NCBI RefSeq assembly: GCF_000400465.1
Contig: NW_008806279.1
Location: 60,001 to 92,000 of the forward strand
Direction: 5' to 3'
Source: Wallemia ichthyophaga EXF-994
Taxonomy: Eukaryota; Fungi; Basidiomycota
Length of the DNA: 32,000 nucleotides
In this document: positions 9,344-30,018 of the stretch, piece after piece
How the letters are laid out: every line of letters begins with the position of its first letter
Numbering within the stretch: position 1 is the first letter of the stretch
Notes under the pieces: generated by a model
The model's database searches: none
What the model saw: only the letters and a program-made list of their open reading frames with translations
Told to the model about the DNA's origin: nothing
Made by a program: the position numbers and the translations under genes

Positions 9344-12299
9344 ATGACACATCTCTCGGTGAATGCAGAGAACGCAGCAAAAGCAGAGAATTTCGCAAAC
9401 AAGCTTCCCAGTCCGCACACTGCCACGAAGCTGCTCAGTGACCCACTCGCACTCCTCCCGCCGATCCTATCCGTCGACGATGTGCACGCGCTGTTGACAC
9501 CCGAGCGAGGAGAGGCAACGCAGACGCCTACACGCACACTGAGCGCTGGGGAGAAGGAGCGACTGGTGAATCGGGCGCTAAGCGAGGCGGTGTCATGGAC
9601 AAATCTAGCTCTGCTCGACTGCGTGTTAGGTGCAGTAGGGCGGCGGTGGGTGAATGTCGATCTGCGCGATAACGAGCGCACGCCCATGCTCGTAGTGGCC
9701 GCTGCGTCGTGCTGGCTCGATGGGATAGCTCTTTTGCTTGGCGCCGGTGCCGATCCCAACGCGAGCGACAGTCGTGGGTCAGCCATTACGTTATCCGCAC
9801 GCCTCACAATAACATGACTGCAGAATCGTGGACGGCACTGCATTGGTCGGCTATTAACTCGCATAGTCAGCCAGACGTCTGTGCGCGCATTGTCGCACTC
9901 CTCCTCCACCACGGCGCTTCGCCTCTTCTCACCTCTAGCAAGGGACGCACCGCGAGGGATATCGCACCCGTTTCAAACGATATCGGTGAACTACTCGACG
10001 GGGCACAGGAGCAAGCGGCTGCGCAGTCCAGTTCCGACCTCTTCTCACTCTCGCAAGCGTCGCTCACACCGTCGCATACGCCGCGTACTAAACTGCGAGC
10101 GCGCGAGAAGAAGGCAGCGCGCAACACGTCGATTCTTCACCACGCAGCAGACGAACTCGGCTTCGACCGCGCGCTGGTCCACGACGCAGCACCAGGAGAG
10201 GGTCACGCGGAGGGTGAGGAGGAGGATGAGATGGAATTAGCTGATGGAATGTCGCGGGTATTCGATTGGAGTGTGTGTCTACCCCACCAGATGCTCATTA
10301 TCAATCCCGACACTCTACAGCTGGCCATAGATGCCCTCCTCGCGCTCCCGTCGCACCCTCGTCCCATAGCCTACGCAAGCGCACCTGCCAGTGCACTCTT
10401 CTTGTGGCAGCGATACGCCACCCATTACGGCGATCCTGGTGGTGAGCTCTCCTCGCTCATTTTCGACCATGCCGTTGAAAACATCGAACAGCGCGCATCA
10501 GCTGCCGCTGATAATCTCCCAGCACTCGCTTTTTGGTTGCACAACGTGACATTATGGCTCTACTTCATCGGCGCAGACGGGACGTTATGCGAGTTTCACG
10601 ACATGCAGGCTATCTTGGCCGATTTGCTTAACGAGATACACGTCTTTGTCGTGCGACTCGTCGAACGCAGACTGGATGCCCTTCTCGACTCCCTCATTCT
10701 CGACTTTAATAGCATGCCTGAACTAGATGATGTCCGACTCGACGGCGAGTGGAGGATCGTGCGTGCGCTCACTAGGCGCAAGGATGGCGCTAAAAGCCCT
10801 GGAAAGAGAGGTCTCGGACATCGAAGAAACGGTGGCGGAAGCTTGTCCAGCAGCATTTTCGGGATGGGCGGTGGTGGTGGATCGACGAGTTCGTTTGCAG
10901 ATATTTTCAACGGCAGTAATAACAAGAATGAAAAGAAGGAAAAACACTCGGATTCACTCGGACCTACCTCGCCGGCATCCCCCAGATCACCATCATTTGA
11001 CGAGGCTACAAAACGGCGGCCGATTAGCACATCCATTTTGCCTTCAGATACCACCTTGCCCAGTTCGCCATCTCTGTCGTCTTTAGCAAATGCAGGTAAT
11101 TCAGGTACCCACGACACGATCGGCGACAAGTTTAAGAAGATCAATGTAGAAGACATTGACAACGGCTCACCCAAGAAGCTCACCCATCTACTCAACTCGA
11201 CTCTGCTAGTATTAGAGCAATACAATGTGAATGAGGCGACGATAGTGCAGATTTTCTCTCAAATCCTCTACTGGACGTCTAGCGAGGTATTTAACCGTGT
11301 GATAACCAATAAGAGGTACTTCAGCCGTAGCCGTGCGACAATGATTCGCTTCAACCTGAGCGCGATTGAGGAGTGGGTGAAAATGAACAAATTGCCAGCG
11401 AGCATATTCAATCACCACTTCGCACCTCTCATGCAAATGCTACAGTGGCTGGGATGTCTGTCGGCGATGACGGATTTCTGCGCACTCATTTCGACCCTAC
11501 AGGGTTTGCGCCAGCTCAACCCAACCCAGTTGCACAAGATGCAGAAGGAGTATCGCCACGAGGCAGCTCCCGTCGTTGAGAGCCGCATGAGCGCTGAGTG
11601 TGTCGCTTACCTCGATCAGCTCGTGCAGGCGTGGGACTCGCGTAGGTGTTCCGCTGATTCGCAGCAAACCCACCCAACCCCAGGCGTGCCGGCCAAGACG
11701 ATGAACCATGTTGACTACCTATACCCAAACTCGGATAGTGCACCCACTCAGCAAAACGGAGTTGGAGTTGGAGTTGGTCTCGGATTAGGACTGGGTGTGC
11801 AGCCGAGTACCGCCACCAGCAGTAGTAACAGTAATATTAACAGTAATAGAAACAGTCACAGTCACAGTCATAGTGCCACAGGCGATGCGTATATGCCCCC
11901 ACCTTTGCCAGAAAACTTTGGGGAGCAGGTCGACAGCAGGTGAGTAGACGTTCTCCACACTCCATTTTCGACAGAAGCGCAACAAAATGGCTAACACGAC
12001 CAAGGTACATGCTGCCATTCGAGCTGCCGAGCGACCTGGAACACCTGCAGTGGCGGCGTAGGAAGTCGGCGCAGACGGCCGATACGACTGACACCCCCAG
12101 GATGGCGTCTCTCGGCGCGCTTGACGATGACCTCCTCTCTGTTCCCACTTCCCGCCCGGCGTCGCGCGCTTCGTCGACGCATTCATCCTCCCCTCTCGCG
12201 CACAATGCGCACACCGCTCAAGTCACCATCACACCGGATGTACCGCAGGATATTTTGACTCGTATCGACAATGCTGTCAGCGAGGGCGTGAAGCGATAG
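9344..12299 (+). CDS. Ankyrin-repeat + DIL (dilute) domain protein, YPR089W-like
   Basis: Ankyrin motifs (LLLGAGADPNASD, WTALHWS, LLLHHGASP) and a DIL domain (QIFSQILYW...FNRV...YFSRSRATMIRFNLSAIEEW, LNPTQL). Introns at 9774-9823 and 11940-12004 join the three ORFs. Confidence 0.85.
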
Positions 12300-12401
12300 T
12301 TGCATGATTTAGCGTGTATGCGTGTATTTGTGTATCAAGTATCAAATATTTATAGGATCAATGTTTGACTACATGATTGAATTTGAACTAAATGTTATCT
12401 C

Positions 12402-13010
12402 ATGAATTGCATCGCACTTACATCCAGAGCAACATCTCTACCGACAGAGCTGACACATAAGATTTTCGATAACTATCTGATTCCTACTGAATTAGGGGAC
12501 ATCCCACTAAAGGAGCCCTACTTTACTAACAAATATTGCTGCTTCTTTGCTAAACAGAGCTCAAAAGGTGTAAATATTTTCTGTCACTGGGTTATGCATT
12601 CAAACGTTGTGTTTGAATTTTTCCGCGGAGGTTTTTCCACGACACTGCGAAGTTACAACTGCAATCTTCCAATCTGACTGTAGTGAAGATAAGTCACAAC
12701 TCAGTCGCCCAGCGTAACGTAAACTGATTGGTTATGCATTCAAATTAGTATTGTGTCACTGTCATGTTTCAGAAACAAAGCTAAGTCGCCTGAGCGAATC
12801 GGGGTCTCTGTCAAGCCTAAAGATCATTTCCAATTGAAGGCTCTCAAGGCTTTAATCATAAAATTCTTTGGCTGTATTGAGCCCCACGCCGTTTATCGTC
12901 GGTGTCGGACCAGGTATATTCGTGACTACAGTCTTTTTCTGATGAATACAGCAAATCTACACTTTTTACGCGTTGCATCTGATTTTCTAAGATTTTAAAC
13001 TCAAGTCTGG
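12402..13010 (+). pseudogene. Possible degenerate F-box-type gene remnant
   Basis: Short ORF with an F-box-like start (SLPTELTHKIFDNY), followed only by interrupted frames. I could not build a continuous spliced model. Confidence 0.25.
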
Positions 13011-13877
13011 TCAAGTTTAGTGCTGAAATGAGGTCTGCGTATCTGCTAATCCAATACATCACCCAAATGTTTTGGTTTCAACTCCAAAGCTCAAGTGTTT
13101 CATTATTTTAAGGCTCCAATAATGATTATAAGAAATTCTCACTTTTGCACCTTGAAATCAACGCTACTAGCAACGTTTCTCTTTCAAGTTTATCAAGCTT
13201 GTGATTCATGAAAGAAGGTGGCACTCTGTAAATATCTAGTATTTATATATTTGTTTCTTTAAATAATCGCATCACCAAAGTCGAGCTGGCCTTTCTAAAA
13301 ACACAATCCACAATCATCAGCGAGCGCAATCTCAACGAGCACGAACAAGCGCGAGGATCAATAAAGCAGTTTATATTCATGCTAACGCTATCTTCATTCA
13401 GCGATGATTATATCCGCTGCCAAATTATGTTTCGAAGATGTCTCAGCCACATAGCATTGTGATTGAGTGCGAGTACTGAACTTGGGTGCGCTGTAAACCT
13501 GCTTCGAGAACAAGCTTAAGAAGAAGCATCCATATAGACATGGAAGATATTGATTATTTCGTGCTATCACTCACCTCATTGGTAACGCGAACGTTGATGA
13601 GCAAAAATGGCACAAATGACGAAATATATTCAACGCGTCGCTAGCGGACCAAAGCAAAGATTCCGAGATCCAGAAACGGATACAGATTTAGATCTATCGT
13701 ACATATCTGACAATATCATCATAATGGGTTACCCTACACCTGCGAGTGAGAATAAAATAAGCAAAATAGCCGCGTGAATCTCAAAAATACTTTTAGACAA
13801 TTATCAGGCGGTATTTCGCAATAACCAGGACCAAGTGAGAAAGCTGCTTGAGTGGGTTACAGTGCGCAGGAGGAGAG
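13011..13877 (+). repeat. Segmental direct duplication, copy 1 (partner at 27253-28144)
   Basis: Manual alignment gives about 10 substitutions and one 25-bp indel over ~870 bp. Confidence 0.97.
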
Positions 13878-15202
13878 GAATACTGACGAGTTATTGAGTG
13901 TAGAAGTAGACACGGACGTAATTGGAGGATATACAATCTGTGTCCGTGCCACGAGAATAAGTATGATCCAGCCTATTTCTACAATCAAGGTCGGTTGCTT
14001 TTGCTAGCTGTCAGCTAGTGCTAACTAATTGTCTATCAGTGGTAAGATATCCATTCCCAGATCACCATGCACCCCCTCTTGCATTGATAAAGGTTGCTGT
14101 GAAGAATATGGGGAGATATCTGAGCGAGAACGCGGAGAATGTTGTAGTAGTACACTGCAAAGCCGGTAAAGGGAGAAGTGGGACGATTGCATGCTGTCTT
14201 CTGCTCACATTGGCTGAGCTGCCACCGCCAAGTCGACATGTATCCAACAGGCCAAGACACTCTTACTACCCTTCAGGTAATGAGATTGATGCGGATCAAT
14301 CAAGACCTTCACAACTAAAAACTCATCAGGGACATGCTAAAAGTGACGCATCAGCAGTACAAAGACTAGTGGAACCCCATATCATACCCTCAGCAGCGTC
14401 GAGTACATCACACCTAACGACGACAGAAGCGACAGAAAACTCAAACTCAACCCTACCACCTGCTTTAGAGAGAGCAGAAGATGTTCTAAAGCTGCACACA
14501 CACCGTCGTATGAAAACTAAGGAAAGTAATAAAACTAAGGAGAAGGACGTGTCTAGATGGCGGATGGGTGTAAGCATACCGTCTCAAAGGCGATTCATTG
14601 AATATTTTGCGAGGGAGTTAGCAAATGAGGTTGTACACAACAGTCACAATGTCAGAGTATGGAGGGTGACAGTTCGGCTGAGTGAAAATTTTGGAAAACT
14701 TGCTAAAACGATGTGAGTGGCTCGCAATCAGATTGGCTTTGCTAATGCTTTGATAGCGTGGGTCTCGGTAATACCCGTCTCTGCCTACATTTTGCTAGGT
14801 ATACAGATGATTATGTGGAAGCGTTACAAGACGGTGTAAATAATGATGATGAATCTTTTTCGATCCAAGATGACAGATGGGACAAAGAGAAGATGGTTCA
14901 TAGGTTTGCAGAGACGGACGAATATACGACTGAAGAGGATGATCAAGTAGGTAGGCTGTTTTAACGACACAACAAACTAAAAGAGCTAGGGCATCAAAAC
15001 CTTAACCTTTACGCCAGAAGTAATCCTCAACTCCAGCCGAGAATGTAGATTAAGATTGGTGTACGGACAAGTATCAATCGGATGGATATGGTTTATACCT
15101 GATTTTCATGAATCCGCGTTGATTATAACAAATGAGCAGATCGATTTTACGAAAGGAGCGTTAGTAGGAATATCTCTTGTCGATGTCAAAGTAGAGATTT
15201 AA
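13607..15202 (+). CDS. TEP1: PTEN/Tep1-like phosphoinositide phosphatase
   Basis: DLDLSYISDNIIIMGYP, VFRNN, IYNLC, PFPDHHAPPL, catalytic HCKAGKGRSG, IPSQRRFIEY and a C2-like tail ending VKVEI*. Five short GT-AG introns, the first at 13746-13796. Confidence 0.9.
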
Positions 15203-15322
15203 CACTCTGGTCACACTCTTCTCTTTAATACAATGTATGAAATAGAATAAACTATGATATGATGATGACTTTGATGACTTTTAAATTAAAAAGAAAGAAA
15301 AAGCTTGGATTTTGTATTAAGT

Positions 15323-16544
15323 TTACTTTGATTCCTTAATGGCGTCAGATGAGCCACCGTCTATTGAATTGGAAGATGCGTTTTGATGAGAAGATTGATT
15401 AGTAGGTTCGTTAGATTGAGCTGGTTGTGAATCAGCAGATTCAAATTGGGCTGACATAGCAGCAACTTGTTCATTATGATTGCTAGCTTCAACAGGAGTT
15501 GCACTATCATCAAATTGAGCATTATCATCTTGTGGTAAAGATTCAACGTCAACATTTGACTTTTGGGCATTTGGTAAAACCCATTTCTTCCAAACACCAT
15601 GAGCGAGCCTAACTTTACCAACAGGATTTGTGTTGCTAGCGATGAAATCAATCTCTTTTTGTACTTGGGACATGTCCAAAGACTCTTTTTGCAAGACGCC
15701 TTCTTCTTTTTGAGAAGGCTCTTGATTACCGGCGAAGAAGAAGACTTCGACGAGTTGAGACATGGCAAAGACATCTCTAAGGAGGTAAACGTCGACAGAG
15801 AGAGCTTTAACTCTATTGAAAGTAGTGAAAACAGGTATATCGACCCAGCCATCACTATCCATTTGCTGGCGTAAAAAGAAGTCCCTAACTAAATTTTGAG
15901 TAGTGAAGTAATATTCTAATTGGCCTAATAAATAGAATCTCAAAGGATCCAAAGGATAGTTTGTAGTTGTAACAGGAGTTGGCATTGGCATTGGAGCGTA
16001 AGTGTGACCTGCTTGAGAATTTGGAGCGCCAAACATTTGAAAAGAGGAAGGCATAGGAGGAACGACGGGAGGGAAAGCCTTATCCTTTGGATTCTTATCA
16101 AGGTTCTTTTGATTTCTACGATTTGATGATTTTCTTTGATTTGATTGGTGGGGATTTGAGTTCTTTGATTTTGATGATTTGCGTTGATTTTGTTGCTTGT
16201 TTGAAGGCTGTTGAGCTTTAGATTTTGAAGAAGATTTCTTATTTGAACGTGGAGGTTGAACTGGTAATACTTGCTCAACAGGTACGCTAACCCAGTTCTT
16301 CTTACCTGTAAAAGATTGTTAAAATGGCTTGTAAAGGGAATATTACTGAATACACACCCCTCCGCGTACTCGTAATTGAATCATCCTTCTTGTTATCTTT
16401 CTTCTCCTCACGCTCCTCTTCCCTCTTGTCATTAGCATCTGAAGCTGACGGCCAAGATATTTCATCCTTCACAAGTAAATCTTGTTGACTTGCTGGACTC
16501 GCAATTGCTTGTCTACTCTCCCACACGTTTCCATTACTCGTCAT
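15323..16544 (-). CDS. La-motif RNA-binding protein (LARP1/Sro9-Slf1-like)
   Basis: La motif LLGQLEYYFTTQNLVRDFFLRQQMDSDGWVDIPVFTTFNRVK. N-terminal SWP and KKNWV motifs. A 52-nt intron at 16357-16306 links the exons in frame. Confidence 0.85.
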
Positions 16545-16995
16545 TTTTATCTATTTTATTGATCAAAGTTGCGAGTGTTGAAGCTTTGAACGGGGGTGCT
16601 ACACGCTGATACCTATTCTAAATTCAAAAATTCAAAATTTTATATTCGTTTCTTAACTCATTTAGTTTCTTACTATGCTATTCATATCCCATTTCTCTTC
16701 TCTACCTCTTAACTTGCAAACTCGTTCATCTATGTCACAACCTGCTTTCTTCCATTTATAAAGAATTCTATGTTACAGAATTAAATATATCTCCCAAACA
16801 AATCAACTCGCTCCCTCAATTTCTTCATATGTGATTATTTTGTCAAAATTTTCACAAACGAACCAAACTCAAATGCTCGAAATTGTTTCAAAATATCATA
16901 GTCGTCAATTTCAGCACATCTTGCAATTCACATTTTAACATTTGATTCTCACTCAATCTCCCTTGCGACTTGACAACGACGACATCTCGAGCTCA

Positions 16996-19254
<2,259 letters not shown>

Positions 19255-19399
19255 GGATGTAAATGGATCACGAGTATCTAAATTTTATCACGATAAACAA
19301 ATTAAACGGCAAATATATACCTTTTATGTCTATAATTAGTAATCTTGTTTAATAAACAGATCCAGATTCCTGGAAAACGTTGCTTACTCAGAAACGGCC

Positions 19400-20955
19400 A
19401 TGTCCGAGGAAGTGAAGGAATTAGAGATTGTTTTCGATAGCAAGGCAGATATCAAAGTGGCGCATGACAGCAGTAGAGCGCCTGTCATGTCCACGCGCGG
19501 CGTGAACAACCTGAACGGCGTGCGTGGCAAATTGGAGGCATTTGACGCGGTGTTGAAGGATTCCTACCACCCATCGAAGAATCCCACTGGAATTATAAAT
19601 GCCGGTGTGGCGGAGAATGGCTTGATGAGTGATGAGTGAGTGGGGGTTCCGTGTTCCTTGCGCCTGATTAACGGGGAACGCGTCGTCCAGGATAATAAAA
19701 GTGGGTTGATTAGTCTGGGCTATTAATTAATCTCACCACCCGCATACACCCAGTTCTACAACGATAATTTCAAGCTTGACAAATTCGATCTATCGTACGG
19801 CAACGGATTCAGCTGCTCGAGGGAGCTTGCAGCTGCAATGGCCGTGTTCTACAACGACACTCTCAAGCCGGTCGACCAGATCAAGCCTGAGGTGTGTATG
19901 CGCTGATTTGAGTTGTTTGAGCCGTTTTTCACACTCCAAAGCACATAGTAGCAGGTGTTGGTATGTCTGCCGTGAATGGCCAACTCAGTTGGTATCTCTG
20001 TGAGCCTGGTGAGGGTATTCTCATTGGAGCTCCCTACTACAATGGTTTCGATATAGAGCTGCGAGCGCAATCGCAAGTCGAGCCAATCGAGGTGCATTTC
20101 CCTGAAGATGTCCACCCACTATCGCTGGCCGGTGTGGATGAATATGAGCGTGCGCTACTCAATGCTCGCGCTCGTGGCATCACTTCGCGCGCAATCCTCA
20201 TCGCCTCACCGCAGAATCCACTTGGATGGATAATCACCCGCGATGTTCTCATCGCATATGGACGTCTAGCTGAAAGATACAATTTGCATCTCATCTCTGA
20301 TGAAATTTACGCTCTTTCTGTCTTCAGTTCTGATGATGTACCTAATCCGCCCCCCTTTGTTAGTAGTGCGTCGATAGATTGGTCGGCAGAGGGTGTCGAT
20401 CCGGCAAGGGTGCATGTGTTGGTTGGTGCTAGTAAGGATTTCGCCAGCAATGGTCTGCGTATTGGAGCGCTCATCTCACAGTATAATGCTGACCTCGTCG
20501 GTGGGGTGACAAGCAGCTCGGTGCTAATGAAGCTGTCAAGCGCGTCCGAGGTCCTCTGGCTTAGTCTCCTCTCTGATAAAACATTCCTCAACTGGTATAT
20601 AAATGAGAACCAGAGACGACTCGCCGGCTCCTACGCTAAAGTTACTAAGTGGTGCAGACACATGGGCATCCCTTATGAAAAAGCTTGCGCGGGTTTCTTC
20701 TTTTTGATCGATCTCAGAGAATTCTTGCCCTCTCGTAATGACAAAGGAGAACTGCTGTCGAGCGATATGGATAAATTGGGCGAGTTGAACAAGCGCCTGA
20801 TTGGCAATAAGGTCTTGTTTAATCCAGGTACTTCATACCATCATAGGACTGTTGGGGTGTTCCGGATCACCCACACACTCTACCCCCACACGCAGGATCT
20901 GGCGCTGGAAAGAGCGGAGGAGGTGCTGCTACAGACAAAAAAAGAGAATGCTTGA
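19400..20955 (+). CDS. PLP-dependent class I/II aminotransferase, ACC-synthase-like
   Basis: NPTGIINAGVAEN, PYYNGF, SPQNPLG, ISDEIYALS and the PLP-lysine motif GASKDFASNGLRIG. Introns at 19636-19690, 19701-19753 and 19892-19941. Confidence 0.88.
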
Positions 20956-21074
20956 CTAGATCTGGTGCACCATTATATACTCTCGTGTCTCTTTGTCTTG
21001 TGTTGATGTATTTATTTCCACGCACAATACACACGACGATATAATGTGCTTCATATTTATTCACATCCTTCTTC

Positions 21075-23175
21075 TTACAACGCTTGGAAATTTATGTGGT
21101 GGCTCTCCTTCCGACGCTCCACTTGGTCCTCCTTCTTCTCGTGCACGTGCAGCGCAAAGACGACAGCGCCGAGGATGAGACATAGGGTGCTAACGACGAT
21201 AGCGACGAAAGGGACCCACTTATTTTTTTTGAGATACATCTCAATATGCCAAGAGTGCTCATTTGTCTTGGGAGTGATGACTACTTGAGCATTAGGTATG
21301 ATACCTTCAAAGTTGACCTTGTGAGAGTTGTCCAGAGTTTGGGAGGTGTCCTTGAACGTGCTCCCGACGTGTAAATTTTCTATGTAGTTATTCGTTCGGC
21401 CTACGCCTGTGAATGAGTAAGGCGTGTAGAGAGCATCAGACGCGGTAGAGGGGACCTGAGCGAACTGCGCCGCATGTCGTCTGCCAGCCGTATCCAGAAT
21501 GGTAAGTTTGTAACTACCTCCGAGGAGGGCAGCGCCGAATGGTTTAAAAGGTTTATACAGTGCAGTGTCACCTTCACCCTCGCCATCGCCCCCATGTGTG
21601 TCGTCATATAGCCTCACGTCCTGGCAATACGTGTCACATACGCCATTGAGAAGGAGTGTCTTGAGGAAGAAGGCGTCATTGGGCATGTTGTTCTGGATGA
21701 AAGTGAGACCGTGCTGGCGCTGTACCATGACGTCAAGTGTGCCGTCGTCATCTATATCGAGCCACGAGACAACGCGTGCATCTGTAATGTTGTGCAGTGC
21801 TGCATACTTGGACCCGTCGCGCAACTCTATTGTGCGCCCACCCGCTTCTGTCACTTGGCCATCAGAGACCGCTGTATTCTCTAGTATCGCCCCGCGGTCG
21901 CTGCCGTCGTCGTAGTGCAGCAGTGCGAGTATATCGGGGAAACTGTCGAGATTGTAGTCGCCGAGGCGTAGGAGCAGGGGTTGTGAGTGGGCATTTGCCT
22001 CGCTGAGCCACTCCATGCGTAGTGTCGCATTACCTTTGGTGAGCTCATCAACAGAGACTGACAGCGCATTGGTGCTGTCGAGCACAAACTTTTCATCTGC
22101 TACACAAAGATCGGAGGGATTGCGGCAGCGAGTGTGGTCCCCGTTTTTGCTGAAGAGGGAGGGGTGCAAGAGAGCGTCGAAACTCCTGCTGTCGACACAT
22201 AGCGGCATCTGCTTATTGAACCACACATTGATGTGACACTCCCGCCCAACACCATTTCCATCCACACTGGCGCAGCTCGGGAAAACCATGTCGAGTGTCC
22301 CGTCGCGGTTAAAGTCGGCGAATGTTACCAGACCGCTGTTAGGTGGTAGTGGAGTGTGTGAATGTAGGGTGAAAGTGTTGTTAGATGGATTGTTGCGCCA
22401 AATTTGGAAGGCTGTGTCTTTGTTATCTTTATCAGTACTTTCATCGCACAACAAGAAAACGTCAGCCAGACAATCGCCATCAAGGTCTATGAAAGCGTTA
22501 GAGTGTTTCTGCGTAAGTTTGCAAGGCTGGCCGTCGAAATTGAGAGGAGAGGAAGACAAAGAGCCATTGTGGTTGCGAAAGAGGGAGAGCGTGTCAGTGT
22601 CGGTGTTTGCGTCATCTGCGTAGGCGTAACCGATGTAGTCGGGAGAGAGGTCGCCGTACGCGTCGAGGAAAGTGGGCTGTGTGTAGCGAATACTGGGAAG
22701 TGGGGAGTGGGTATCAAAGCCATCGCCATGGCCAGGGTAGAGGGACATCTTAATTTGATTGTCGTCGGGACTACCGACAGCGATGAGATCAATGAGCCCA
22801 TCACCGTCAATGTCGGTTGGAATGAGCGAGTCGAGGGGAAAAGGGGAAGTGGCTGTACTAGAGATTTTGAAGGATTTGGCAGAATGATCCCAGATATAAG
22901 TGGAAATGGAGTTGTTGCTGCTGTCGATAGAGATTAGATCGATGCTGTTATAGAGTGAGCTGCGACAAGTGAGAGAAGCAAGGAACAGACAATTGATCAC
23001 CGTTTAAATCAGCGAGTGCGGATATTCGTGTGGTTCCTGGAGGCTCCAGGTTACCACCGCTGGAGTTGCCGGGAGAGACACCCAAGTTGCCGAGATCGAC
23101 CAAGGAATTTGAAAAGGTAGCTTGGACGAGTGTGGAGAGAATAGCAGTGACAGTGGCTGTAGATATAAGTTTCAT
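21075..23175 (-). CDS. LINKIN/ITFG1 (T-cell immunomodulatory protein) homologue with FG-GAP repeats
   Basis: Signal peptide, repeated D-x-D-G-D motifs (DIDGDGLID, DLDGDCLAD, DFNRDGTLD, DIDDDGTLD), GVGRTNNYIE, one TM helix and the tail RRKESHHINFQAL. One 46-nt intron restores GDQ-F-IDLI. Confidence 0.85.
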
Positions 23176-23238
23176 TAAAATAAAAAATAAATTAGCTCAA
23201 TTAGCTCATCGGTGTTTGAGTTGAACCATCAATCGATA

Positions 23239-23856
23239 ATGTCAGTATTAGATCACCCAATAGAATTCCTCCCAACTTCAATTGATAAAGATAAATATGA
23301 AAATATTCAGATGCCTAAGAGGAGATTGAAGAGGCTTTCCTTGTTGAGTGGTGGGAGTAGTGGTGGGAGTAGTGGTATAGCGAGTACCAGTGCTCGTACT
23401 AGTGCCAGCACCACCAAACACAAACCAAGTACAAGCACAAGCACAAGCACAGATGCGGAATCACTCATAAGTTTATCACGTCCAAGTAACGACAGCAGTA
23501 ACGCACCAATAACTCAACCAATGACACTATTCGATCAACACGCTCCACTTTTATCTCGAATAGCGCATAAGGAGACAATCATTAATGATTTACAAGATGA
23601 GCTCGATATGCACACAGTTGAACTTAAAAGATTGCGTAAAGATTGGCGTAGAGTTGTTAGAAATCAAAAGCGAGATAATTTGGATGAATTGGGGCACCCT
23701 GTTTACACAGATCACTCAGAGGAACCAACTCCGACCACTCAAACCCCACAACCAAACGCTTACTTGCAACATTCTGTCGATTTGCTCGTTGATGGCGTAG
23801 GCGCTTTTTGGGATACACTTCGCAGTGGACCTGGACTCCAACCGAATGGCAGATGA
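23239..23856 (+). CDS. Hypothetical coiled-coil protein (DUF4048-like segment)
   Basis: Intronless ORF from the ATG at 23239. LLSRIAHKETIINDLQDEL...LKRLRKDW resembles the fungal DUF4048 coiled coil, recalled from memory and not searched. Confidence 0.6.
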   Translation: MSVLDHPIEFLPTSIDKDKYENIQMPKRRLKRLSLLSGGSSGGSSGIASTSARTSASTTKHKPSTSTSTSTDAESLISLSRPSNDSSNAPITQPMTLFDQHAPLLSRIAHKETIINDLQDELDMHTVELKRLRKDWRRVVRNQKRDNLDELGHPVYTDHSEEPTPTTQTPQPNAYLQHSVDLLVDGVGAFWDTLRSGPGLQPNGR

Positions 23857-23971
23857 TATACTTGACTTGAATACCTTTATGACGTTTGAAATCGGATCTT
23901 CTTGTATAAATTGTATCATGAAACATAATGTATAACAATAATTTTACATATTCAAGTAGTCATTACCACAA

Positions 23972-24936
23972 TTATCTGAACAAAGCCCTTGCACTTGCAT
24001 TACTCACCCTATTATTACTTTTCTTGGCACTAGCAAGGAGATCTGTATGCGATGGGTGCATCAGCTTGTTTGGACGTGGTGTGACTGGTGGTTGTTGTGA
24101 GCATGCGCTTCTCTTCTTCGATTCTTCAACACCACTTGAACTACAACCACTTAAACTGCCAGTATCGACACAATCAACGCTATCCAACTGATAATCCTCC
24201 AATTCATCCTTCGCGTGCATACTCACTTTCGCACTCTCCTCTTCCTCCCTCTGAAGCGCCTCTAGTTGAGATGCGTGGTGGGCATCTGCGAATAGAAGAC
24301 GTGGCTTAGGGTTGGGTAAAGGTGAAAAGTCGATATGAGATTCAGGGAGGTGTGCACGCTGTTTAACAGCACTTGGGAGATTTTTGAATGGGTTTGTGAA
24401 TGCGCATTTAGCCCCACGGCTGTAATTGGTGTGAGTTCAGCCTAGCGAGAGTGAAATCAGTCAACCCACAATGAATACATCATAAAATCAGGTTCAGGAG
24501 AAGAAGTCCTCTTACTCTTCCCTTTAACTGGTCTTTTGTTTGTTGTACCAGAGAATATGTCATCGTCTGGGTCCTGGGTTGGTATAGCGTTTGCGTAGAC
24601 TGATTTCGAGGTACTTGGTTGCGGCGAGGTGTTCAAGTCATCCAAGCTATCATCAAAATCACTAAAGTTCAATTTACGCGGAGATTTGCTGGCATGTTCT
24701 TGGAAACCATCCTCCTCCTCATCATCATCATCTAAAAGACCATAAACGACGCGTCTTTTAGGATCCTTTCCTTTGTGCAAGTACGCGGATGGCGGTAAGT
24801 TGTCGTCAGAGCGTTCGTCATCGCTCGAACGCGTGTCGTTGAGCAGCTCGTCGTGGAGTGAGTGGCGGGGATGTTGATATTTATACTTCTTTTGTACGTG
24901 TATGTTATGAGGAGATTGTGGAGATCTTTTTGGCAT
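23972..24936 (-). CDS. Hypothetical low-complexity protein
   Basis: A GTGGGT...TTACAG intron after MMYS joins the 159-aa ORF to FRGAKCAFTNPF...DFSPLPNPKPRLLF and reads in frame into the 84-aa ORF. Confidence 0.65.
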
Positions 24937-25020
24937 AATTTTAATAATTTTGATTGTCGTCGTTTGAGTCTAAAAGCGGCTGACCCACTAAGTCTTCGAT
25001 AAGCAGCGAAATTTAGCAAA

Positions 25021-25662
25021 ATGAGCCAAGATACACGTTCGTACGCGTCAAATCAGCTTCCATTTGGCGATAAAGTTAAAGAATTTATCGATGATCAGAT
25101 TGCGGTACTTACAAAACCGGTGGACTGGAATGGCAAGATTCTCGCAGGTAGCACGATGAGCAAGGAGACAGTAAAAGCGATTTATGAACACGTGAATTTA
25201 GAAAGAGACGTCGTTATTTCCACTCATTTCAATCAGATTGCTAAAATGTCTGTCGTTGAGCAATTGACAGAAATACAGCGTGTTAAAGAGATTGATGAGA
25301 AGGAGAGACGCGAGGAGGAAGACAACGTCATCTTCATCGATAAGGGAAAGAGTAGCCTGTTGGCTGAGTTCCCGCAGCGGTGGCCTGGCGATGAGCATCA
25401 CAGAGATTCACAAGTAAAAAGATATGATCAGAAGATGTCAGTTTACAAGAGTAACCTTAAGCTTATCAATGACCAGAAGAATAAGATCGCAGAGTATAAA
25501 CGTCTCTATGAGATGTTATCCAAATTATCAGATGAATCCATCGAGCTGAATTGCGATGTAATGGAACAAGATACCTTTGAAGAAATCAATGACAGGCTCG
25601 ATGACATGCCCAATCAAGATATTAAATCAATCTATACCGCCAACCACTTGGATCTGTTGTAA
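25021..25662 (+). CDS. Putative kinetochore Sim4-complex subunit Fta4-like
   Basis: The pattern KEFIDDQIAVLTKP...QIAKMSVVEQL...FPQRWP...RY + coiled coil resembles the FTA4 family as I recall it. Not confirmed by search. Confidence 0.5.
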   Translation: MSQDTRSYASNQLPFGDKVKEFIDDQIAVLTKPVDWNGKILAGSTMSKETVKAIYEHVNLERDVVISTHFNQIAKMSVVEQLTEIQRVKEIDEKERREEEDNVIFIDKGKSSLLAEFPQRWPGDEHHRDSQVKRYDQKMSVYKSNLKLINDQKNKIAEYKRLYEMLSKLSDESIELNCDVMEQDTFEEINDRLDDMPNQDIKSIYTANHLDLL

Positions 25663-25690
25663 CCACCATCGTCTAACTTAGTATACTCAA

Positions 25691-26800
25691 ATGCACGCAC
25701 TCCTTCTAATACTGCTGCTTATAAGTCTAGTATATTCAAAACCATCTCTTCTCGTTTTACATGGCAGTGATTTAGATTCTTACACTCAGCTATCTGATGA
25801 GCTGGAAAATTCCTTTGATACGGCGTATAAGGATATACAGAGAATCAGTCAATATGACTTAGATTACAACAATCTGCTGCTACTCTCAGATACACTCCCA
25901 ACCAACCTCCACTACCCAATCTTAGATAATTTACAACACAACAACATCGTCATCACTTCAGAATCCAACAATCTATCAAATCTAGCTAGACAATTCAATT
26001 TACAGCTATCGAACAAACCAATTACCGCCTTCGATGGAGCTAATGAGCTGGAAATCCATTCAAACCCACACTCCTGCACGCTATCTTACAATGGCCACTC
26101 ACACTCATACATATCCAACTCACAACTTATCCATCCAAGTCTATCATCGCCACCCGCAACCTCTCACTCAAAGTCTCACCTCATTTCATCCCTCCAATCC
26201 ACCAAAAACACCAGAATGTCTTGGATTTCCAGTAAATCCTTCCTTAATGACACGTCGCTTTCAAACGAATGTAACAAACAATCTGCACTCGACGTACTTC
26301 TCTGGACATTCCAACAAAAGGGAGTTGTCAAGGTCACTCAAATGAAACACTACAAAACGGGTGAATCAGAGACACCCGAATATGTCTACAATGATGAATC
26401 GAACTTTGAGCTCCACCTTTCAGATGAGAACAATCAGCCATTCACTACGCACTCGCTCCAACTCGATTTCACTATGCTCGATCCACACATCCGCGCCCAC
26501 GTCCCCCCATCGCACATCTCCGAAGATGGTACATCTATGGTTTACAAGCTCACTTTTAGAGTTCCGGACCGTCATGGTATTTTCAAATTCGTTGTCGATT
26601 GGAAGAGACAGGGTTACTCATTCATAGACGAGCAGATGCGCACTACTGTCGCACCTATTAGACACGACGAACATCCACGCTTCCTTAATCACGCTTGGCC
26701 TTTCTATTCAGGCACCCTCTTTACTCTCGTCTCTTTTGTCGCTTTTGCCGCCCTTTGGCTCAGTTGGGATGATAAGATTAAGGGTAAAAAGAGTGAGTGA
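25691..26800 (+). CDS. WBP1: Oligosaccharyltransferase subunit Wbp1/OST48
   Basis: Signal peptide, LDFTMLDPHIR, FRVPDRHGIFKFVVDWKR, PIRHDEHPR, TM helix and a C-terminal KKSE (KKxx ER-retrieval) motif. Confidence 0.9.
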   Translation: MHALLLILLLISLVYSKPSLLVLHGSDLDSYTQLSDELENSFDTAYKDIQRISQYDLDYNNLLLLSDTLPTNLHYPILDNLQHNNIVITSESNNLSNLARQFNLQLSNKPITAFDGANELEIHSNPHSCTLSYNGHSHSYISNSQLIHPSLSSPPATSHSKSHLISSLQSTKNTRMSWISSKSFLNDTSLSNECNKQSALDVLLWTFQQKGVVKVTQMKHYKTGESETPEYVYNDESNFELHLSDENNQPFTTHSLQLDFTMLDPHIRAHVPPSHISEDGTSMVYKLTFRVPDRHGIFKFVVDWKRQGYSFIDEQMRTTVAPIRHDEHPRFLNHAWPFYSGTLFTLVSFVAFAALWLSWDDKIKGKKSE

Positions 26801-27252
26801 GTGAGCTTTGTGTTTTATTTATATCATTTAAAACATTATACACATCATATACATCTTAAATTTTATCTATAATGATCTCGTCCAACAATCACCATACCAG
26901 ATTGGATGATAATCTTTTGAACGAGTGCGAGTGGGAGCGAAAGTAATAGAAACGCTCTCAATCTTAATCAATGAGATTTTTCACTTTTCAAGCGTCGACC
27001 CTGGTTTCCATCTAAAAACACCTTGTTGAGGCTCCCACTCATGTATGACTTTCCAAAGCTGAAGATTTTAATATGCAAAGGCACTGACATTCCGTCTTAA
27101 CTATCATTTCAATACAGCTCAATCATGAAACTATTTGAGGTGTTCGACCTGTGCAAAAGGTTTGCTAATAAGCAGTCACACCCCAAGTTGACAAAGATAC
27201 ATCTCACAATAAACGACATCAACGCAGATGGCGCATGGGAGAAAGACTCTGC

Positions 27253-28144
27253 TCAAGTTTAGTGCTGAAATGAGGTCTGCGTATCTGCTAATCCAATACA
27301 TCACCCAAATGTTTTGGTTTCAACTCCAAAGCTCAAGTGTTTCATTATTTTAAGGCTCCAATAATGCTTACTAGAAAGTCTCACTTTTGCACCTTGAAAT
27401 CAACGCTACTAGCAACGTTTCTCTTTCAAGTTTATCAAGCTTGTGATTCATGAAAGAAGGTGGCACTCTGTAAATATCTAGTATTTATATATTTGTTTCT
27501 TTAAATAATCGCATCACCAAAGTCGAGCTGGCCTTTCTAAAAACACAATCCACAATCATCAGCGAGCGCAATCTCAACGAGCACGAACAAGCGCGAGGAT
27601 CAATAAAGCAGTTTATATTCATGCTAACGCTATCTTCATTCAGCGATGATTATATCCGCTGCCAAATTATGTTTCGAAGATGTCTCAGCCACATAGCATT
27701 GTGATTGAGTGCGAGTACTGAACTTGGGTGCGCTGTAAACCTGCTTCAAGAACAAGCTTAAGAAGAAGCATCCATAAAAACATGGAAGATATTGCAACTC
27801 ATCCAGGACAAAGATATTGATTATTTCGTGCTATCACTCACCTCATTGGTAACACGAACGTTGATGAGCAAAAATGGCACAAATGACGAAATATATTCAA
27901 CGCGTCGCTAGCGGACCAAAGCAAAGATTCCGAGATCCAGAAACGGATACAGATTTAGATCTATCGTACATATCTGACAATATCATCATAATGGGTTACC
28001 CTACACCTGCGAGTGAGAATAAAATAAGCAAAATAGCCGCGTGAATCTCAAAAATACTTTTAGACAATTATCAGGCGGTATTTCGCAATAACCAGGACCA
28101 AGTGAGGAAGCTGCTTGAGTGGGTTACAGTGCGTAGGAGGAGAG
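27253..28144 (+). repeat. Segmental direct duplication, copy 2 (partner at 13011-13877)
   Basis: Near-identical to copy 1, with an extra 25 nt at 27795-27819. Confidence 0.97.
27874..28144 (+). pseudogene. 3'-truncated PTEN/TEP1 fragment (exon 1, intron 1, exon 2, start of intron 2)
   Basis: ATG at 27874. It encodes the same first ~64 aa as 13607 onward, with one synonymous AGA>AGG change. Homology stops inside intron 2, before the catalytic motif. Confidence 0.85.
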
Positions 28145-28574
28145 AACTGCACGATAATTCTCAATAGTCTTGATCATTCTTGCATCACCGCGAACCTCCA
28201 CCTCCACCCACATGATCTTTAAGCGGTGATTCTATCAGCTGACAGCAGCTGTCAGGTTCAGCAGGTAGAACTAGCTGAGATTTATGCGGTCATGATCCTT
28301 GCGCGTGCTCGAAGGAAGCGTACAACAAAGTGGGTGATGCCGATCGAACGTTCCTGGAGAACGAACGAACGAGAAGTAACTGACGACAAAAGTCAGAAGT
28401 CAAAAGCACCGAAGCACACCTAATACAGCTGAGTCAGAATATATCGAGGAATGTTTCTTGGAATGTTTCGGCGTAGTTATGTCTGGTTCAAAAAAGGAGC
28501 ATGTTCATCGGCAATAATAATTTTATAAGAAGAAAGTAACGTTGACAGAATAAGCCTTACGAGAAGACTTCCAT

Positions 28575-29249
28575 ATGTCAGACATAAACATAAAGCGGGA
28601 AGCGATCTCTCAATCGTACAAACCATTTCACCACAAACACAAGCATTTCGACAGAGAGATCCTGGTGGAAGGAATGAGTATGAGAACTAAAGAAGAGAGT
28701 GTACTGAGGTACATGAGTCAATTTGGAGCAGTGGACACTCTATCGATATATTCCTCCAAACGCAGTCAAACGGCATTGCTCACATTAACAGATGCCGAGC
28801 ATGCGCGACAAATTAGTATCAGAGATCACTGGATAGACAACAAGCGAGTAAATGCTAGACTGTATATACTTGCACTGGCCAGCGGTGGATGTCTCACTGT
28901 CAATATCGACGGAATACCCCCATCCATCCCAGCTGAGGGGGTGGCAGAGGCGTTAAAATGTTTCGGAAGAGTTATCCACGCTAGCATCAAGCACAACAGC
29001 AATATAGGCAGAGCGTCAAAGGGATTTGGTGTGTTTTGTTTCGATTGTCCAGACTCAGCTAAAGATGCTGCCAAAGAGGGTGAACTGATGTTGGAAGGAC
29101 AGAAAGCGAAAGTAAGCTACATGGGAAGGACTCGCAATACGTTTGGGGCGGACAGTCGGGTGGGCGGGGTGAAGTTTTTGACAAGGATAAAAGTCGCGAT
29201 AAATTGGAATATTTCATGTGGTTTGTGCGGCGTGTGGTGTGCGTTGTGA
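28575..29249 (+). CDS. Divergent protein with two RRM domains
   Basis: RRM1 (ILVEGM...YMSQFGAV...ALLTL...HWIDNKRVNAR) and RRM2 (VNIDGIP...KCFGRV...RNP1 KGFGVFCF...LEGQKAKV). Intronless. Confidence 0.7.
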   Translation: MSDINIKREAISQSYKPFHHKHKHFDREILVEGMSMRTKEESVLRYMSQFGAVDTLSIYSSKRSQTALLTLTDAEHARQISIRDHWIDNKRVNARLYILALASGGCLTVNIDGIPPSIPAEGVAEALKCFGRVIHASIKHNSNIGRASKGFGVFCFDCPDSAKDAAKEGELMLEGQKAKVSYMGRTRNTFGADSRVGGVKFLTRIKVAINWNISCGLCGVWCAL

Positions 29250-29319
29250 ATAAGGACACGTCTAAAGTGGCGTAAGACATCCCAATTCCAGGAATATCAA
29301 CAAACACCTTGACATCGGC

Positions 29320-30018
29320 ATGTCATCATCGAGGAATATCGAAAGAATGAGCAAATGGAGCCGTAGGCTGCAGCGGGTACAGACGTATTCAGGGGTTGCT
29401 TTTGGTGGGTTCGCATTGCAGCACACGCTCCCAGCGCTGCTAGCGAGTGTAGGACAGCTGGAGCTGAGTGAGCAAGTGGTGATGATAGAGCGGGCAGTGT
29501 ACCACTCGCCGTATGTGGAAGTGGTGTGGGTTATTGGATCAATATCTGTGCACGTGATCGCCGGTATCTTGCGGCGTGTAGTGTTGAAGAAGACAGCGAA
29601 AGAGAATAATACGCAACACACACTCACCACACAGCAGAAAGCAGGCTGGATGCTGACGCCACTCCTCACAACGCATTACCTCATCCACCGCTCAATACCC
29701 AGTTTGGATACACCGCCTATACGCTCACTTTCACCGTCCGAACTCTCTTACCCGCATTTCGTGGGCTATGCAGTACAAGCACTCACACCACGCGCTGTCA
29801 TATCCGCTACTGCCCTCACCGCCCTCTCAACCCTCACCGTTTATCACAGCTTGGCGGGGCTATGGCGCGGGAAAAAGAACGCAAGGACAGCGCTGAGGTG
29901 CTCAGTCGTCAACGGCGTCAGCGTATTAGCTGCATTGGTTAATATGGGCAGAGCGTACTCCAGTGTGTCTTACTTAGAGCCTCGCTACGAAGCAGTGTAT
30001 GGTTATTTGGGGTTGTAA
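29320..30018 (+). CDS. MCP1: Mitochondrial membrane protein Mcp1-like (DUF1691)
   Basis: LQRVQTYSGVAFGGFALQH, RAVYH...SVHVIAGILRR, AGWML...HYLIHR, YH...GL: hydrophobic helices carrying conserved His residues. Confidence 0.65.
   Translation: MSSSRNIERMSKWSRRLQRVQTYSGVAFGGFALQHTLPALLASVGQLELSEQVVMIERAVYHSPYVEVVWVIGSISVHVIAGILRRVVLKKTAKENNTQHTLTTQQKAGWMLTPLLTTHYLIHRSIPSLDTPPIRSLSPSELSYPHFVGYAVQALTPRAVISATALTALSTLTVYHSLAGLWRGKKNARTALRCSVVNGVSVLAALVNMGRAYSSVSYLEPRYEAVYGYLGL

Follow-up and report, generated by a model that had tools for sequence, protein, structure and literature searches.

A stretch of the Wallemia ichthyophaga genome carries the beginning of its PTEN gene twice, and we asked whether the second occurrence is a genuine duplicate, how it came to lie some 14 kb from the first, and whether it could still have a function there. 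The sequence analysed, hereafter the window, is a 32,000-nt stretch of scaffold KE007229.1 of strain EXF-994 (GCA_000400465.1), for which record coordinates are obtained by adding 60000 to those of the window. A repeat search at first returned two families of 300-nt direct repeats, spaced by about 14.25 kb, which gapped local alignment merged into a single direct repeat on the same strand: copy A at 13006-13877 (872 bp, plus strand) and copy B at 27248-28144 (897 bp, plus strand). The two differ by 11 substitutions over 881 aligned positions (98.75% identity) and by one 25-bp indel, in good agreement with a preliminary description of the locus, made by eye, that had put them in the same orientation with ~99% identity, about ten substitutions and one 25-bp indel; its limits (27253-28144 against 13011-13877) were right save for a left end 5 bp short. 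Bases that tell A from B include 13587G/27854A, 13840A/28107G and 13867C/28134T. Identity of ~99% across 870 bp makes a chance origin impossible. Outside the repeat, sensitive alignment of the flanks of A and B gave no more similarity than shuffled sequence in either orientation, so that the boundaries of the repeat are sharp; a larger, since decayed duplication was rejected because no residual flank similarity between A and B was found in either orientation. Two copies were seen within the window and about 3.6 kb more of the scaffold, and a 35-mer from exon 1 had no match in a scan of JGI metagenomes.

Copy A belongs to an intact gene. A hand-built six-exon model places PTEN/TEP1 at 13607-15202 on the plus strand, with its ATG at 13607 and exons at 13607-13745, 13797-13851, 13904-13989, 14040-14712, 14757-14946 and 14990-15202; the spliced translation is 451 aa long. 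Exon 4 yields the phosphatase Pfam matches and encodes the P-loop HCKAGKGR, and the C-terminus of the model forms a C2-like domain. The model matches hundreds of basidiomycete PTEN/TEP1 proteins and is 69% identical to W. mellicola PTEN over 100% of the query, with its start, MAQMTKYIQR, aligned to the start of that protein. Copy A starts 601 bp 5' of the PTEN ATG and runs through the first two exons and the intron between them to end 26 nt into intron 2. The gene order PTEN-La-calcineurin-aminotransferase-FG-GAP is kept in W. mellicola (L007), and this synteny, above all that of PTEN with La, identifies copy A as the parent in its ancestral position. The PTEN 5' region, which the preliminary description had as moved downstream, was thus copied: the parent gene stands intact at its syntenic place. 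To the left of copy A, an apparent F-box-like motif in the ORF at 12402-12677 was discarded for lack of Pfam support, and an exact-protein look-up of the 91-aa ORF left of copy A gave no match.

Copy B, the derived copy, is a PTEN 5' fragment lying between the OST48 gene and the RRM and MCP1-TM genes. It holds 626 bp (601+25) 5' of the ATG, exons 1 and 2, intron 1 and 26 nt of intron 2, so that gene model and alignment bear out the content first ascribed to it (~600 bp 5' of the ATG, then exons 1 and 2 with intron 1 and part of intron 2). Intron 1 is whole and retains GT..AG at its ends. From exon 1 (27874-28012) and exon 2 (28064-28118), translation reads past the stranded intron-2 donor into the start of intron 2 and reaches a stop codon at 28165-28167, giving an 80-aa ORF at 27874-28167 on the plus strand. 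Its 65 PTEN-derived codons specify a protein sequence identical to that of the parent, the single change among them, at 28107, being synonymous. The fragment ends in intron 2 and is missing exons 3-6, and the parental P-loop lies in exon 4; a functional PTEN paralog would possess a phosphatase domain with the HCxxGxxR P-loop and a C2 domain, which copy B lacks, and the 80-aa product had neither a Pfam match nor a catalytic P-loop. With these exons and the P-loop gone, copy B, judged from its structure, would encode at most an 80-aa N-terminal stub, and it appears to be a pseudogene-like relic rather than a second PTEN. The reference nevertheless annotates the stub as a gene (L002, 12854-13147), GenBank EOR01624.1, under the name 'phosphatidylinositol 3,4,5-trisphosphate 3-phosphatase cnrN'; this protein forms a singleton cluster, annotated in the reference only, and is a mis-named, mis-annotated 80-aa 'phosphatase'. 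Neither the 2013 genome paper (PMC3849046) nor the 2019 population paper (PMC6738226) discusses a duplication of a PTEN fragment, and the duplication screen of the former counted protein alignments of >=100 aa only.

A repeat of this kind in a short-read reference might be a collapsed or misplaced sequence, and two observations lend that explanation some colour: the reference was assembled with SOAPdenovo at K=21 from 500-bp and 2-kb libraries (PMC3849046), and a cluster of four substitutions within 12 nt (27367-27378, plus strand), which separates B from A in the reference strain only, resembles a local error and occurs in no sister strain. All six sister-strain contigs that reach this cluster carry the A-type bases, making it private to the reference copy B; it reflects either a complex mutation private to that strain or a fault of gap closing in the K=21 assembly. 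The duplication itself is recorded elsewhere. Sister strains were assembled with IDBA-Hybrid at a maximum k of 120 (PMC6738226); these NCBI assemblies are reference-guided, whereas Logan contigs are reference-free. Seven distinct sister-strain contigs (14 samples; L008-L014), each 13,651-13,951 bp long, correspond exactly to the unique segment between the copies; one of them, SPNZ01000198.1, starts at window position 13761, inside copy A. All seven are single-copy across the 13.4 kb, cross the junction 27247|27248 and end 119-333 nt into copy B. Every one stops exactly 119 nt past a variant or past the unique flank, which, given k 120, is what is expected of a de Bruijn assembler where the next k-mer is common to a second locus.

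Logan contigs from a strain 0.6-0.7% diverged from the reference (SRR25393947) behave in the same manner. One (L003) ends exactly 30 nt into copy B, k-1 for k=31; another (L017) starts exactly 30 nt before the B-specific 28107G, carries 28134T, crosses the right junction at 28144 and continues into the RRM ORF. Beyond the reference, eight contigs (seven IDBA, one Logan) thus support the left junction, and a single Logan contig with B-specific SNPs supports the right one. Misassembly or collapse, foreseen at the outset as what would undo the duplication, was looked at in this way, and both junctions of copy B are present in contigs from other samples. Because contigs cover both junctions, are laid out as described and stop exactly k-1 bases beyond the final base that tells the copies apart, the position expected for a true two-copy repeat, we conclude that the duplication is no misassembly and regard the chance of an assembly artefact as negligible.

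We then compared the site with that of relatives. OST48/WBP1 (25691-26800, plus strand) is the ancestral left neighbour of the insertion site, and a gene with an MCP1-TM domain (29320-30018, plus strand), which lies directly 3' of OST48 in the outgroups, the ancestral right neighbour; exact-protein look-ups of these two ORFs gave no match. The spacer between them measures about 220 bp in W. hederae (L016), about 630 bp in a Wallemia sp. (Logan SRR25399871; L015) and about 90 bp in W. mellicola (L018), and tblastn and blastn found neither a PTEN fragment nor an RRM ORF between OST48 and MCP1-TM in these three genomes. The corresponding interval of W. ichthyophaga, 26801-29319, spans 2,519 bp, made up of 447 anonymous bp, the 897-bp copy, 430 further anonymous bp, the 675-bp RRM ORF and 70 bp, with a GC content that ranges between 37 and 46%. 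The left flank of copy B (26801-27247; 447 bp, 37% GC) and its right flank (28145-28574; 430 bp) are lineage-specific intergenic DNA in which no ORF or homolog was found, and neither has an alignable counterpart in the outgroups. The adjacency of OST48 and MCP1-TM without a PTEN fragment in three outgroups indicates that copy B is derived and W. ichthyophaga-specific, and on the same comparison the whole interval 26801-29319, RRM ORF included, is W. ichthyophaga-specific DNA. Since the flanks cannot be aligned, the empty site is not reconstructable, microhomology at the junctions cannot be scored, and one-step and two-step origins are inseparable.

Copy B is present in every W. ichthyophaga contig examined and absent from the outgroups, and so arose after the lineage had separated from these relatives but before the sampled strains diverged from one another. 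The term 'recent', as applied to it earlier, therefore stands with respect to three other Wallemia genomes and gives way with respect to the strains, the more so because the ~1% divergence, through apparent gene conversion, underestimates the age of the copy. Divergence between A and B is not a clean clock in any case: four of the 11 differences are confined to copy B of the reference strain, and copy B is unusually polymorphic, with seven variants in 333 bp of one sister-strain contig (L008; reference-private cluster excluded) against about 0.3% in the remainder of the contig. The differences comprise six transitions and five transversions without directional bias, and the RIP signature, an excess of C:G to T:A transitions between copies A and B, is absent. 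A further remark of the preliminary description, that both copies lie in gene-poor patches, holds with the qualification that the second patch is gene-poor largely because of copy B itself. A Pfam search of all small ORFs in both patches returned no match, and the window gave no match to Rfam and none in a tRNA scan, so that no non-coding RNA explains the duplicated upstream DNA.

The 25-bp indel (27786-27810, plus strand), extra in copy B and absent from copy A, deserves separate mention. In copy B the 9-mer AAGATATTG at 27786-27794 recurs unchanged, in the same direction, at 27811-27819, and this perfect direct repeat brackets the indel. Such bracketing is the classic footprint of slippage or of microhomology deletion, and the difference is most simply read, from this direct-repeat signature itself, as a putative deletion from copy A after the duplication by one of these two routes. 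When the DNA upstream of A and flanking B was compared by tblastx and blastn with W. mellicola, W. hederae and the Wallemia sp., PTEN exons alone aligned; the outgroups thus do not polarise the indel.

How, then, did the fragment arrive? Retroposition is excluded, as intron 1 and the upstream DNA are kept and there is no poly-A at 28144. Capture of a gene fragment by a transposon (a Pack-MULE, Helitron or similar element) is known in fungi and plants, and the fragment does begin with TC, as Helitrons do. Around 27248 and 28144, however, we found no inverted or direct repeat pair that could be a TIR or TSD; the 3' end reads GAGAG, not CTRR, and has no hairpin; the same sequence is ordinary promoter and exons at the parental locus; two copies only were seen; and repeats make up just 1.67% of the genome (PMC3849046). 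Such capture is accordingly highly improbable, and the flank alignment, the GAGAG end and the missing poly-A agree with the first description of the segment as a non-transposon copy without TIRs, TSD or Helitron ends. The hallmarks of a DNA-level partial duplicate are all present: two sharp-edged copies, a retained intron and retained upstream DNA, a syntenic parent, an empty outgroup site and independently recovered junctions. We are highly confident that copy B is a real, species-specific, non-transposon partial duplicate, dead as a phosphatase.

Its sharp junctions, free of transposon hallmarks, fit copying during the repair of a break. A double-strand break or stalled fork in the spacer downstream of OST48 may have been repaired by copying from a nearby ectopic template, through templated insertion or a template switch followed by end joining. 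About 0.9 kb would have been copied from the PTEN locus (upstream region, exons 1 and 2 and 26 nt of intron 2) and joined, in the same orientation, into the spacer 3' of OST48, 14.2 kb downstream on the same chromosome. One-step templated copying during break or fork repair is the most likely mechanism, with something close to an even chance of being correct; that copy B is a genuine, W. ichthyophaga-specific, DNA-level partial gene duplicate, a mechanism of this sort included, we regard as likely.

The geometry of the repeat also accommodates an origin in two steps, in which 13006-27247, a 14,242-bp unit from PTEN to OST48, was first duplicated in tandem and the second unit then lost ~13.4 kb, with its first 872 bp left in place. 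Copy B begins exactly 14,242 bp past the start of copy A, abutting the end of the would-be first unit, the copies are in direct orientation on the same chromosome, and new segmental duplications are most commonly tandem. Yet this history requires two events, the second of which must reach the end of the second unit or beyond with no other remnant; the window contains no other repeat; and the longer second unit occurs in no strain examined, the seven contigs that span the 13.4 kb being single-copy. We consider a two-step origin rather unlikely. The RRM ORF, too, is lineage-specific, and the history of the site may exceed a single insertion.

A different extension of break repair would bring in the PTEN fragment, the RRM ORF and the flanks together, as one multi-template insertion of ~2-2.4 kb (MMBIR/chromoanasynthesis-like). 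It would account for the absence of the entire 26801-29319 interval from three outgroup genomes and for an RRM ORF with no ortholog above 32% identity, and would remove the coincidence of two independent gains in one short spacer. Against it, no source locus was found for the other pieces, GC varies from 37 to 46% along the interval, and no close RRM paralog was seen, in a search that hid the window's own proteins and was clustered at 90%. A composite insertion is, on balance, unlikely. The adjoining orphan RRM ORF marks the spacer as a site of lineage-specific sequence gain.

The contig ends that authenticate the duplication also carry information on its later history. A contig end lies k-1 bases past the last B-specific base, and eight contigs can be read in this way; variants relative to the reference that fall inside the terminal k-1 stretch must then occur in both copies of that strain. 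Counting from 27248, two such variants are found in L010, at offsets 150 (+A) and 155 (C to A), one at offset 20 (G to A) in L011 and L003, and one at offset 5 (C) in L014 and L003. The same C to A at offset 155 is the exact terminator of L009, hence B-specific in that strain, and the offset-5 base is the terminator in L011-L013. That a variant is copy-specific in one strain and common to both copies in another suggests that the relic and the 5' region of the working PTEN gene now and then undergo non-allelic gene conversion, a reading of assembler contig-end behaviour that we consider somewhat more probable than its opposite. If it is correct, changes in the promoter or leader of the sole PTEN gene can come from the relic.

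The remaining question is whether copy B does anything at its new position. Beginning 430 bp downstream on the same strand is a 224-aa ORF (28575-29249, plus strand; 675 bp) with a Pfam RRM_1 match and, by remote homology, two RRM domains resembling multi-RRM proteins at <=32% identity. It had no tblastn match in W. mellicola (L007), the Wallemia sp. (L015) or W. hederae (L016), no exact-protein match, and no close homolog among 5.8 billion clustered proteins (90% clusters, with the window's own proteins hidden); between the reference and the strain of L017 it shows a single nonsynonymous difference. It looks like a real but orphan gene. An in-frame splice from PTEN to RRM was set aside as implausible, needing an intron of at least 536 nt where W. 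ichthyophaga introns average 68 bp (PMC6738226).

Functional co-option, compatible with any of the structural readings, would have the PTEN promoter drive the RRM gene, as the preliminary description suggested, or the 80-aa stub act as a regulator. Its appeal lies in what has been kept: ~600 bp of DNA 5' of the gene, the ATG, the donor and acceptor of intron 1, 65 PTEN-derived codons that are protein-identical to the parent (the change at 28107 being synonymous), the copy itself in all strains seen, and, 430 bp downstream on the same strand, an RRM ORF that is itself new at the site. Set against this, the distribution of differences (one in 194 coding nt, ten in 687 non-coding nt) gives no significant evidence of constraint, gene conversion would equally preserve the stub, variation among strains is unusually high in copy B (the seven variants in 333 bp of L008 against about 0.3%), and the long intron noted above weighs against a PTEN-RRM fusion. 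The supplements of the 2013 genome paper hold no entry for the gene at the copy B locus, expression included. From these features co-option seems quite unlikely. A fuller proposal, that the relic promoter and 5' leader supply transcription of the RRM ORF while the relic and the PTEN 5' region exchange sequence by conversion, would be a long shot. Were it true, promoter capture would help a new RRM gene to become established, and in this extreme halophile the two loci would co-evolve, while variants from the stub, among them the 25-bp difference that alters a uORF, could enter the regulation of PTEN.

As a simple partial duplicate, copy B has ready counterparts. Young DNA-level partial, or fragment, gene duplicates have been catalogued in nematode, fly and yeast genomes, and Katju and Lynch reportedly surveyed duplicates in C. 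elegans. Like these partial duplicates, the Wallemia copy is ~1 kb long, retains introns and upstream DNA, truncates the coding region, shares a chromosome with its parent and shows low divergence; unlike them, it is dispersed 14 kb away rather than adjacent to the parent. On its own the event is of a well-known kind and unremarkable in genome evolution: a gene copy, young and truncated, that GenBank already half records. Human PTENP1, by comparison, is a processed PTEN pseudogene: an intron-less retrocopy with the full coding region, on another chromosome. It resembles the Wallemia copy as a non-catalytic, PTEN-derived relic, whereas the latter keeps an intron and the promoter, extends over exons 1 and 2 only, and is DNA-mediated. 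For the apparent exchange with the parent, a closer analogue is human CYP21A2/CYP21A1P, a gene/pseudogene pair that exchanges sequence by non-allelic gene conversion. In both systems a truncated or dead copy, kilobases to tens of kilobases away, appears to trade short tracts with the gene, and the relic could in this way donate variants to the 5' region of the functional gene; in Wallemia, by contrast, the exchange is read from contig-end logic and has no known phenotypic consequence.

As regards mechanism, double-strand breaks in budding yeast can acquire templated insertions, stretches of about 10-1000 bp whose sequence comes from other places in the genome (PMC12214859, PMC11724301). These match copy B in size class, in the use of an ordinary genomic segment, in their freedom from mobile-element features and in their sharp junctions; the yeast insertions, however, were observed experimentally, in mutants or at induced breaks, whereas the Wallemia mechanism is inferred from the end product. 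With 9.6 Mb and 1.67% repeats (PMC3849046), the W. ichthyophaga genome is among the most compact and repeat-poor fungal genomes known. The locus offers a clean, datable, non-transposon dispersed duplication in such a basidiomycete genome, and one for which population data exist. Copy B also explains why the short-read assemblies of the species all show a recurring contig break, and it probably accounts for an OST48 gene model that is over-extended.

The double-RRM ORF (window 28575-29249, 224 aa), which lies downstream of the derived partial PTEN duplicate, is an orphan. It is not present in the OST48-MCP1 spacer of W. mellicola, W. hederae or the Wallemia sp. assembled in Logan, and a search of 1.8 billion representative proteins recovered as relatives just generic multi-RRM proteins at no more than 32% identity. 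The reference annotation merges this ORF and the neighbouring MCP1-TM gene into one 462-aa model.

The last of these comparison genomes, represented by a 45.5-kb contig (L015; Logan SRR25399871), is syntenic with the window at a DNA identity of just ~72-73%, with 69% protein identity in OST48. Distinct from both W. hederae and W. mellicola, this genome thus appears to represent an additional Wallemia species, existing only in raw-read assemblies.

OST48 itself is modelled in the reference as a 416-aa protein (window 25691-27262) that splices beyond a stop at 26800 and ends 15 nt into copy B, the PTEN duplicate. Because the 369-aa ORF carries a TM segment and KKSE at its C-terminal end, and aligns with the outgroup proteins up to its own stop, the extension beyond 26800 looks like a prediction artefact. 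The three other Wallemia genomes share an OST48 intron of ~50 nt after codon 308 (L015 10930-10978; W. hederae, L016 11586-11637; W. mellicola, L018 6921-6971), whereas the W. ichthyophaga gene (window 25691-26800) is intron-less, which looks like a lineage-specific intron loss.

The 25-bp difference between copy B and copy A, the 5′ end of the intact PTEN gene, alters an upstream ORF in the leader (window 13486-13644 in copy A versus 27782-27820 in copy B). In copy A, a 35-codon uORF starts at a uATG (13540) and runs over the PTEN ATG in a different frame, whereas in copy B the equivalent uATG (27782) is followed by just 12 codons before a stop, which lies 54 nt upstream of the ATG. Were copy A the version that lost the 25 bp, PTEN leader regulation would have changed after the duplication.

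Directly upstream of PTEN, synteny with W. mellicola is lost (window 9709-13606 compared with L007 1-10000, the W. mellicola PTEN locus), and that species lacks, upstream of PTEN, the DIL-domain and aspartokinase genes seen in the window. This loss places the gene-free 1.3-kb patch containing the left end of copy A at a rearrangement breakpoint. The W. mellicola locus has, upstream of PTEN, a 4.3-kb stretch without a called gene (L007 5848-9370, minus strand), whose long minus-strand ORFs of 472, 240, 188 and 194 aa are probably one unannotated multi-exon gene.

MAKER models of the sister strains (L008-L014) merge adjacent genes, joining FTA4 and OST48 (570 aa) and calcineurin and aminotransferase (1051-1084 aa), and, as the contig begins within the repeat, leave a shortened PTEN of 266 aa. 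Positions 1-420, at the left edge of the window, are tandemly repeated with a period of 24 nt (14 registers, 60-100% identity); the array probably encodes an 8-residue repeat in a gene truncated by the window start.
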